Shown here one piece after another: positions 36,105-37,870 of a stretch of DNA of 60,170 nucleotides. The number at the start of each line of letters is the position of its first letter. Position 1 is the stretch's first letter. The stretch covers positions 179,163,015-179,223,184 of the forward strand of contig NC_068982.1 of assembly GCF_001194135.2 (NCBI RefSeq), given 5' to 3'. The notes under the pieces were generated by a model. It was not told the DNA's origin and searched no databases. It was given only the letters and a program-made list of their open reading frames with translations. The DNA comes from Octopus bimaculoides (lineage: Eukaryota). Position numbers and translations under genes: made by a program.

Positions 36105-36181
36105 GCGGACATATAGCATAGTGATTAAGGGCGCGGGCCACAAATCCCAAGATTCCGAGTTCGATTCCAGGCAGTGACCTG
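36105..36181 (+). mobile_element. SINE family C tRNA-like head (split copy, 5' part)
   Basis: A-box-like TAGCATAGTGATT and B-box GTTCGATTCC (36159-36168); homologous to the reverse complement of 40433-40505. Confidence 0.85.
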
Positions 36182-36307
36182 AATAATAATAATAATAATA
36201 ATAATAATAATAGTAATAATAATAATAATAATAATAATAATAATAATAATAGTAATAATAATAATAATAATAATAATAATAATAATAATAATAATAATAA
36301 TAATAAT
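36182..36307. repeat. (AAT)n, about 42 units with two AGT interruptions
   Basis: Read directly; left flank of the LINE insertion. Confidence 0.95.
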
Positions 36308-37656
36308 ACCGTCGGGGGAGGTTTTGAAGCAAATAGAAGAGACAACCAATATGTATTTAGGGATTTGGGAAATGGATAAATTGATGGAGAAAGAAATGAC
36401 AGAAAAATTTAAGGTGGAATACTTGCGCAGACTGAGACTAATCCTTAAGTCGAAATTAAATGGAAGGAATAAGATCGAAACTATCAACAACTGGGCGGTT
36501 TCACTCCATAGATATGGAGCAAGGGTAATCGCATGGACAGTGGACGAACTAAACAACTTTGACAGCAAGACGAGGAAGTTGCTAACTAGATATGGGATAC
36601 TCTACTCAAAAAGTGAGTTAAACAGACTGTATATACCAACAAAGAGAGGGTGAAGACGACTCATTAGATGCGAACACAGCATTAAAGCAGAACAAAACAA
36701 CATAGCATGGTATGTAAAAAATGCCACAGAACCGCTATTATTAGAAGTAAGAAGCTCAGGCTTGTGTAGGATGAAAGATTGCAATGATAAAGCACTGTAC
36801 AAGAAATTGAAAACGAATGAAACTGAAAATAGGTGGGTAAAGAAAAGAATGCATGGACAATTTCATAAGGATGTTGTTGATAAGACAGACAGAGAAAAAT
36901 GATGACTGTGGATGACTAAAAGTGATATAAAACGGGAAACGGAGGCTCTAATCTGTGCTGCTCAAGAGCACGCACTAAGAACAAACTACATAAAATACAG
37001 AATAGACAACACATCAGAAATTGATAAGTATAGAATCTGTGGACAAAATGGTGAAACCGTATGGCTTATTACCAGCGAATGTACGCCACTCTCCAAGAAG
37101 GAATATAAAAGACGCCACGACAATATAGCAAGGCTTGTCCACTGGACACTTTGCAACAAGTATGGACTTGACAGAGCAAAAAATTGGTACGAGCACAAAC
37201 CCGAAGGCAACATCGAAAATGATAATGCAAAGATCCTGGTGGGATTTTATGATTCAGTGCGACCATGAGATAGAGAATAGGAAGCCAGACATAGTCTTAA
37301 TTGAGAAAGAAAACAAACCATGCAGGATCATAGATATAGCATTACCATCTGACAACAAGGTATGCGATAAAGAAGAGAGAAAATTCGATAGATATGACAG
37401 GTTAGCTTGGGAGGTTAATCAGTTGTCATCGATGAAAAAGGTGGTAGTAGTAGTACTAATAATTGTCGGAGCCCTGGGAACAGTGAATAAAAATCTTGAG
37501 AAATAGATGGAACAAATAGGGGCTGCAATGAGTGTGGAGCACTTGCAGAAAATAGCATTGCTTGGAACCGCTGGAATACTCCGGAAAGTGCTCGAAAACT
37601 AAGATGCGTTAGATTAGTTCACAGGTAGTGAACAGCTGACACCGTAGTACATCTTC
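36306..37656 (+). mobile_element. 5'-truncated R4/Dong-type LINE with complete 3' end (RT thumb, CCHC, RLE)
   Basis: LILKSKLNGRNKIETINNWAV; ETEALICAAQEHALRTNYIK; YRICGQNGETVWLITSEC (CCHC knuckle, H>L); KRRHDNIARLVHW; WDFMIQCDHEIENRKPDIVLIEKENKPCRIIDIALPSD; LLGTAGILRKVLEN*; ~55-nt UTR followed by (AAT)n. Confidence 0.93.
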
Positions 37657-37718
37657 AATAATAATAATAATAATAATAATAATAATAATAATAATAATAA
37701 TAATAATAATAATAATAA
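37657..37718. repeat. (AAT)20 tract
   Basis: Read directly; right flank of the LINE insertion. Confidence 0.95.
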
Positions 37719-37870
37719 CATCGGCAAATACCTTAGGAATGAGAACCCAGGTTCGAAATTTCCCCAAGATACCAGATGAAGGCTGGAGGGTATATCAGCC
37801 GAAATGTCGTGCTAGCAACAATCAGAATGAGGACAAATATCCGTCAAATGTAAATAATGTAAATAATGTA
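37719..37870 (+). mobile_element. SINE family C body and tail (split copy, 3' part)
   Basis: CATCGGCAAATACCTTAGGAATGAGAACCCAGGTTCGAAATTTCCCCAAG...GAGGACAAATATCCGTCAAATGTAAATAATG, homologous to the reverse complement of 40260-40417. Confidence 0.88.
37768..37813 (+). ncRNA. Minimal type-I hammerhead-like motif in SINE C (U4>A in this copy)
   Basis: GATAC CAGATGA A GGCTG[GAGGGTATAT]CAGCC GAAA T GTC | GTGCT. Confidence 0.6.

Follow-up and report, generated by a model that had tools for sequence, protein, structure and literature searches.

A tRNA-headed SINE of Octopus bimaculoides split at its (AAT)n linker, probably by a Dong-like, microsatellite-specific LINE

The stretch of DNA analysed here, called the window below, comprises 60,170 nucleotides of the Octopus bimaculoides genome (RefSeq assembly GCF_001194135.2, contig NC_068982.1, positions 179,163,015 to 179,223,184 of the forward strand), and all coordinates count from its first letter. 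Within it, a tRNA-headed short interspersed nuclear element (SINE), referred to as SINE C, spans 36102-37868 and is split exactly at its own (AAT)n linker. Between the two halves lie, in order, an (AAT)42 tract, a 1,348-bp 5′-truncated fragment of a long interspersed nuclear element (LINE) of the type that carries a restriction-like endonuclease (RLE), and an (AAT)20 tract. The features of the locus, together with the intact SINE C copy to which it is compared, are as follows.

36092-36101, plus strand: left target-site duplication of the SINE, TATATGGTCA, matching the right one at 9/10 positions
~36102-36181, plus strand: tRNA-like head of SINE C, containing a box A-like TAGCATAGTGA and a box B-like GAGTTCGATTCC
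36182-36308, plus strand: (AAT)42 tract forming the 5′ flank of the LINE, from the SINE linker or expanded from it
36309-37656, plus strand: dead, 5′-truncated copy of an apparently (AAT)n-specific RLE LINE, from tblastn and phmmer matches
37023-37082, plus strand: degenerate CCHC motif, DKYRICGQNGETVWLITSEC; C..C..H..C is kept in the alignment of relatives
37276-37395, plus strand: RLE core of the PD-(D/E)xK type (NRKPDIV...IIDIALPSD...KEERKFDRY), from conserved columns
37600-37656, plus strand: stop codon (37600-37602) and shortened 3′ untranslated region (UTR) of the LINE, from alignment with the related loci L001, L002 and L083
37657-37718, plus strand: (AAT)20.7 tract, LINE tail and/or leftover target tract, running in phase into the SINE body (...AATAA/CATCGG)
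37719-37868, plus strand: body of SINE C, whose 3′ end is of the (TGTAAATAA) type; identity with the intact body 86%
37869-37878, plus strand: right target-site duplication, TATTTGGTCA, paired with the left one
40260-40505, minus strand: intact SINE C with an (AAT)4 linker, the "empty" comparator, aligning to both split halves

The intact copy is 246 bp long and its halves are joined by only (AAT)4, which alignment confirms as an earlier sequence-only reading of this DNA had claimed. When compared by BLAST within the window, the head of the split copy is 88% identical to that of the intact one (E 2e-26), and the body aligns with an E value of 2.5e-51. The joints read ...GACCTA(AAT)4AACATGG... 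in the intact copy and ...GACCTG(AAT)n ... (AAT)nAACATCGG... in the split copy, so that no SINE base is lost on either side and both joints are in phase with the intact element. Because the target-site duplication brackets both head and body, and because its register is shared with the intact copy, where a comparable duplication matches at 9/11 positions, the head and body arrived as one SINE, and the material between them is either a later arrival or part of the same event as the SINE insertion. The possibility that the head with its (AAT)n constitutes an independent SINE was considered and rejected, as both copies have identical head-linker-body joints and outer target-site duplications. Tandem Repeats Finder places (AAT)42.3 at 36182-36308 with 96% matches and (AAT)20.7 at 37657-37718 with 100% matches; with the alignments, this upholds the extents that the sequence-only reading had given for tracts, head, body and LINE. 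The longer tract contains two AGT interruptions exactly 39 nt apart (36213-36214 and 36252-36253), and this spacing therefore suggests duplication of an AGT(AAT)12 block during or after growth of the tract.

SINE C has the features of a tRNA-derived SINE, namely a head with box A-like and box B-like motifs of RNA polymerase III (Pol III) promoters (read by eye), a short length, target-site duplications and several copies in the window (two copies and one fragment). ARAGORN does not call a tRNA at the head (36102-36181). The TTTT at 36322-36325, from which it had been argued that Pol III read-through from the head is unlikely to matter, is present. The "hammerhead" label previously given to this SINE is not supported: Rfam searches over a few hundred to 1,900 bases give no hammerhead in either copy, whether at gathering score or relaxed to E<=10, the candidate cores in the two copies read CUGGUGA and CAGAUGA whereas CUGAUGA is required, and the RNA folds no better than shuffled sequences (z-scores +0.66 and +0.88). 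A consensus of many SINE C copies might restore CUGAUGA, although this would have no bearing on the insertion. Two short matches to positions 187-241 of SINE C, in its 3′ part, lie back to back and inverted at 44983-45074.

The LINE fragment encodes, on the plus strand, the C-terminal 430 residues of a LINE protein. It begins at about residue 693 of a 1,117-aa reference open reading frame (ORF), approximately 55 residues past the YxDD motif of the reverse transcriptase (RT), and since its start falls after this motif, the RT catalytic core is absent. Four stop codons, at 36651, 36900, 36903 and 37504, and a one-base insertion frameshift near 37238 interrupt the reading frame. A CCHC motif had been claimed for the fragment, and the site of the motif is indeed present, but the motif is not intact, as it reads Y-x2-C-x8-L-x4-C, with the first Cys replaced by Tyr and the His by Leu. 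The four stops, the frameshift, the mutated CCHC ligands and the missing RT core together mean that this copy is dead. The PD..D..K residues of the endonuclease are nevertheless retained and homologues carry an RT upstream, in keeping with the initial description of the insert as a 5′-truncated LINE with an RLE.

When used alone as a query, the fragment has no Pfam match and no PDB sequence match, and its family is instead recognised through its homologues. At E<=1e-5 there are 388 of these, with top identities of 71% and 64%, and many have RVT_1 and zf-RVT domains upstream of the matching part; the fragment shares 70% of residues with the C-terminal part of the best homologue over 313 aa, and 71% over the 119 aa that follow. 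The PDB sequence matches of a 748-aa homologue are led by R2 proteins (3e-24), with LINE-1 ORF2p less similar (5e-16), and its KPD...D...K...KY block aligns weakly to the R2 endonuclease. In an alignment of 26 sequences, the C-x2-C-x8-H-x4-C motif and an RHD block are invariant or nearly so, P326, D327 and D342 are invariant, and K354, E355 and K358 are nearly invariant. A scan of metagenome contigs gave 80 related loci at 34-52% identity, making about 85 in all, and the family is very widespread in environmental eukaryote DNA. Full-length relatives measure 3.6-3.8 kb, and many of the loci are 3.6-3.9-kb contigs with a single ORF of 1,117-1,206 aa, in which RVT_1 and zf-RVT are the only domains found; the RT is of the type lacking long terminal repeats (non-LTR), and there is no apurinic/apyrimidinic (APE) endonuclease. 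The first 450 aa of 12 full-length ORFs contain no zinc-finger pattern of the form C-x2-4-C...H-x2-6-H/C.

An AlphaFold model of a 1,114-aa relative, built from a 49-sequence alignment (predicted local distance difference test score, pLDDT, 85; predicted template-modelling score, pTM, 0.73), predicts a confident four-helix N-terminal domain at residues 49-119, an RT domain and an alpha/beta C-terminal domain. The conserved N-terminal block W..DN..vMECY...GY.KRM..IW falls in these predicted helices. Foldseek aligns the model to R2 complexes of target-primed reverse transcription (TPRT) over ~1,000 columns (E 1e-36 to 1e-28, template-modelling score about 0.6), with LINE-1 ORF2p behind R2 (E 5e-23).

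Whether (AAT)n is merely the tail of this LINE or also its target is answered by the junctions of the relatives. On the 3′ side, (AAT)n occurs 40-160 nt past the ORF in 28/46 complete copies. Upstream, (AAT)n precedes the ORF in 12 of the 15 full-length copies, and in those read by eye the start of the 5′ UTR directly adjoins the repeat, many copies beginning with GCGCCAG and the 3′ UTR of another copy often lying upstream of the tract. Among 5′-truncated copies of the distant relatives, a sense-oriented (AAT)n ends within 25 nt (<=25) of the homology boundary in 11/38, against a background of 0.8% of positions. L001, L083, L084 and L085 are the nearest relatives, their best copies sharing 64-66% identity with the window fragment, and there every one of the eight truncated copies that could be assessed directly adjoins (AAT)n, with no two truncated at the same point. 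Copies of these nearest relatives are arranged as LINE-(AAT)n-LINE arrays; the L085 copy stands alone in unique DNA, not far from a fragment of a myosin gene, and AAT flanks it at either end. Because many full-length and variously truncated copies directly follow (AAT)n, far above background, the repeat is a target and not only a tail; coincidence is rejected as an explanation of the 5′ tract, and the earlier proposal of a microsatellite-targeted LINE is borne out. The repeat reads AAT on the LINE sense strand throughout the family, the window copy included, and because the repeat is strand-asymmetric, the window LINE lies in the orientation of the SINE. SINE C was not found in any of the related LINE loci collected.

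The family also displays some variation at its ends. Other 3′ ends consist of (GATAAT)n, (GACAAT)n, (ATT)n, (TA)n, poly(A) or (CCCTAA)n, with non-AAT repeats past the 3′ UTR at L075:838-1000, L039:1990-2040 and L073:5190-5243 and in L052, L055, L037, L049 and L054; the telomere-like (CCCTAA)n is followed by another LINE ORF. These repeats suggest target or tail switching within the clade. At the other end, ten full-length relatives start precisely at GCGCCAG right after (AAT)n (leaders at L005:54-135, L007:61-135, L011:56-122, L012:72-142, L016:84-162, L018:56-134, L020:1-66, L026:77-156, L028:41-120 and L040:653-728). An invariant UUGGUGC lies ~40 nt downstream of the GCGCCAG and can base-pair with it, enclosing a variable hairpin. 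There is no covariation in this long-range helix, the structure being otherwise conserved, and the conserved 5′ UTR has no match in Rfam. The leader structure may be a processing or protein-binding element.

The junctions of the window copy itself can be judged against a second, longer copy of the same LINE family and against the nearest relatives.

31300-33344 (5′ boundary approximate), plus strand: second, longer LINE copy, 84% identical to the fragment over 32747-33344

This second copy has traces of N-terminal motifs from ~31300, an internal deletion in the RT and a 3′ truncation at 33344. Compared with its ...CGATACCATCGG at 32741-32752, the bases common to repeat and LINE at the 5′ junction of the fragment are ATA (36306-36308), the following C belonging to the LINE only, so that the 4-nt ATAC microhomology proposed previously shrinks to 3 nt. 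Three bases of microhomology in AT-rich sequence are weak evidence. At the 3′ end, the UTR (37600-37656, compared with L001:7414-7530 and L002:2744-2850) contains a conserved hairpin, GTTCAC/GTGAAC at 37617-37633, which takes the compensatory form GTTTAC/GTAAAC in L001 and L083. The window UTR is colinear with L001, L002 and L083 until ...ACATCTTC and then passes directly into AAT, lacking the terminal 30-45 nt of the family, a second hairpin and an A-rich end. This second hairpin is kept in the three closest relatives (L001, L002 and L083), and a similar stem-loop precedes the AAT tract in several more distant relatives (read by eye). The window genome supplies a sample of one 3′ end, and its short form may stem from a later deletion, from internal priming or from a UTR that is short in this lineage.

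Several known systems offer a name for this element. Within the R4/Dong clade, R4 elements insert into ribosomal DNA and Dong elements into (TAA)n microsatellites. Members of the clade have an RT and a REL-endonuclease, together with a strongly diverged Myb/SANT domain at the N-terminus, and lack zinc fingers; in most insects, molluscs and cnidarians they target (TAA)n (PMC7998251). Dong itself targets TAA microsatellites in Bombyx mori, Anopheles gambiae and Biomphalaria glabrata (PMC3812793, citing Xiong and Eickbush 1993; Kojima and Fujiwara 2004). The window family resembles Dong (Bombyx mori Dong, DongAg, DongBg and Darwinula Dong) in its single ORF with an RT and a C-terminal CCHC and RLE, in having a helical N-terminal domain (helices here taken from the model) without a zinc finger, in (TAA)n integration with repeat on both flanks and tandem arrays, and in its hosts, the only named homologues being "uncharacterized" cnidarian entries, from a host group listed for Dong-like elements, while the homology searches otherwise returned almost entirely unnamed proteins. 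The window copy differs from Dong in being a dead 1.35-kb 3′ fragment, in the shortened 3′ UTR and in having its target tract inside a SINE. R2 provides the best match in both sequence and fold (8gh6, 9nl3 and 9dou); the RT-linker-CCHC-RLE order of domains is shared, as presumably is the TPRT chemistry. However, R2 inserts at one site in the 28S ribosomal DNA and has N-terminal zinc fingers and a Myb domain (PMC7998251), whereas the flanks here are (AAT)n, Rfam gives no rRNA match in the window and the zinc-finger motif is absent, all of which place the element outside the R2 clade. Landing in simple repeats is a strategy shared with Kibi (TC)n, Koshi (TTC)n, Togen (TG)n, Waldo (ACAY)n and Mino (AC)n, each of which uses a different repeat unit (PMC3812793, PMC4640811).

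On these published feature descriptions, the window element is probably Dong-like, a member of the R4/Dong clade, and we hold the (AAT)n-targeting mechanism with higher confidence than the clade name. The same mechanism in an element of the HERO clade, or of an unnamed RLE lineage, is the alternative that survives best, though we judge it rather unlikely. HERO is an RLE clade in which some families are microsatellite-specific and most are not target-specific (PMC4640811), and the likeness, drawn from description only, thus extends to the endonuclease and, in some families, to the type of target; but the (TAA)n target, the missing N-terminal zinc finger and the helical N-terminal domain fit the Dong-like description (PMC7998251), as do the cnidarian hosts of the named homologues.

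Taken together, we conclude that an (AAT)n-specific, Dong-like RLE LINE very probably landed in the linker of a composite SINE C that had been inserted earlier. SINE C, consisting of head, short (AAT)n linker and body, would have inserted as one unit and created a target-site duplication of ~10 bp, and a (TAA/AAT)n-specific non-LTR retrotransposon would later have landed in its linker. The protein of this LINE, encoded by a single ORF with a helical, putatively DNA-binding N-terminal domain, an RT, a CCHC motif and an RLE, would act by R2-type TPRT, recognising the duplex repeat and nicking its TTA strand. The freed 3′ end could then anneal to the LINE RNA at its (AAU)n end and prime cDNA synthesis, which would have aborted ~1.35 kb in, giving the 5′ truncation, and the cDNA end would have been rejoined within the repeat through a microhomology of at most 3 nt (ATA). 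We infer this order of biochemical steps by analogy, and the 62-bp 3′ tract and 127-bp 5′ tract would likewise have come from three sources: target tract, LINE tail and subsequent slippage. The scheme is built on what can be seen directly, namely the split SINE with its intact flanks, the RT and RLE architecture of the family and the (AAT)n flanking many relatives on both sides.

A number of observations weigh against this conclusion. The window holds only one filled SINE copy, and the repeat lengths are taken from an assembly with many gaps. About two thirds of the truncated copies in distant relatives lack a clean upstream AAT; some of these are cut off by contig ends or fading homology, and others may be real. 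The 3′ junction of the window LINE lies away from the normal 3′ end of the family. Comparisons of the N-terminal domain with Myb/SANT by Pfam, PDB profile search and hhalign to c-Myb were all non-significant, and the clade name was given from published descriptions of R4/Dong elements, HERO having microsatellite-specific families of its own (PMC4640811).

The same arrangement could in principle be produced in one step, if an RT copied the SINE body, switched at (AAU)n to the tail of the LINE RNA, continued for 1.35 kb and then switched back. Such a chimera would be expected to have an identical target-site duplication, AAU repeats on both RNAs would supply homology for switching, and a template switch might account for the odd 3′ junction within the LINE UTR. 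Yet two template switches are needed, the 42-unit 5′ tract is left unexplained, and SINE C was probably mobilised by a different LINE, because its own 3′ end is not of the AAT type; we therefore regard a one-step chimera as highly improbable. An assembly artefact, in which the LINE was threaded between the SINE halves by mis-joins at microsatellites, seems to us just as improbable. The assembly, metazoan-like with 35% GC, does contain nine N gaps, many of them at simple repeats, and pure AAT tracts of 127 and 62 bp are hard for short reads; against this, there is no N gap within 36092-37878, two independent mis-joins would be required, the arrangement matches the behaviour of the family at other loci, and with an (AAT)4 linker of ~14 bp an unbroken SINE would probably have been assembled straight through. 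Least credible of all, with a likelihood close to nil, is that the LINE has no target specificity and carries a mere (AAT)n tail, as the Drosophila I factor carries a (TAA)n tail, its landing in the SINE linker being coincidental, for although a 3′ (AAT)n tract by itself cannot separate tail from target, the variable truncation points of the relatives are preceded by sense (AAT)n well beyond background and their full-length copies begin right after it.

With a later insertion of the LINE into SINE C as the preferred reading, the locus neatly illustrates how a microsatellite-specific LINE makes use of a repeat belonging to another transposon, and even a 12-14-bp AAT tract inside a SINE may serve as the target or seed a later target tract. 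If this is general, SINE dispersal widens the niche of a "safe-harbour" LINE, and LINE tails are a source of long AAT microsatellites. It is nonetheless one nested insertion of a known element type in the expected kind of site, and current understanding of Dong-like elements is unchanged. As by-products, the survey of relatives revealed their wide spread, the precise 5′ ends right after (AAT)n and some non-AAT 3′ repeats. A bolder proposal is that the SINE C linker is systematically used as a landing pad by Dong-like LINEs, or that the linker is itself a Dong scar. In that case, each SINE burst would enlarge the safe target space of the LINE, and AAT-tract SINEs and the LINE would shape each other's copy number, with LINE tails driving tract expansion. 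We consider this proposal unlikely. No rate of LINE occupancy of SINE C linkers can be estimated from the window because it holds one filled and one empty copy only, and other AAT tracts, such as LINE tails and the tails of a second SINE-like family, SINE X, are at least as plausible targets.

SINE X is ~200 bp long and has degenerate AAT/AAC-type tails. Three times, a SINE X copy is directly followed by another unit, a head-to-tail pattern like that of the LINE arrays. Compared with SINE C, it seems to pair more naturally with the LINE and to supply more targets, and it is a candidate non-autonomous partner of the (AAT)n-specific LINE. The SINE X copies and the remaining AAT-associated features of the window are the following.

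15406-15553: SINE X copy
20802-21172, minus strand: SINE X copy
27251-27427, minus strand: SINE X copy
27638-27894: SINE X copy
27918-27954: clean, unoccupied (AAT)12, after a SINE X copy
28140-28352: SINE X copy
29917-30318 (with 3′ UTR to 30562), plus strand: C-terminal remnant of a more distant LINE relative, its 3′ UTR ending in (AAT)4 at 30551-30562

Rfam gives no gathering-level match anywhere in the window. The (AAT)4 that ends the distant LINE remnant is followed by (ATT)4-5, its reverse complement, forming an inverted microsatellite junction at 30551-30577. Between the split and the intact SINE C, at 38491-38886, lies an ORF that by eye resembles a mariner/Tc1-type transposase.

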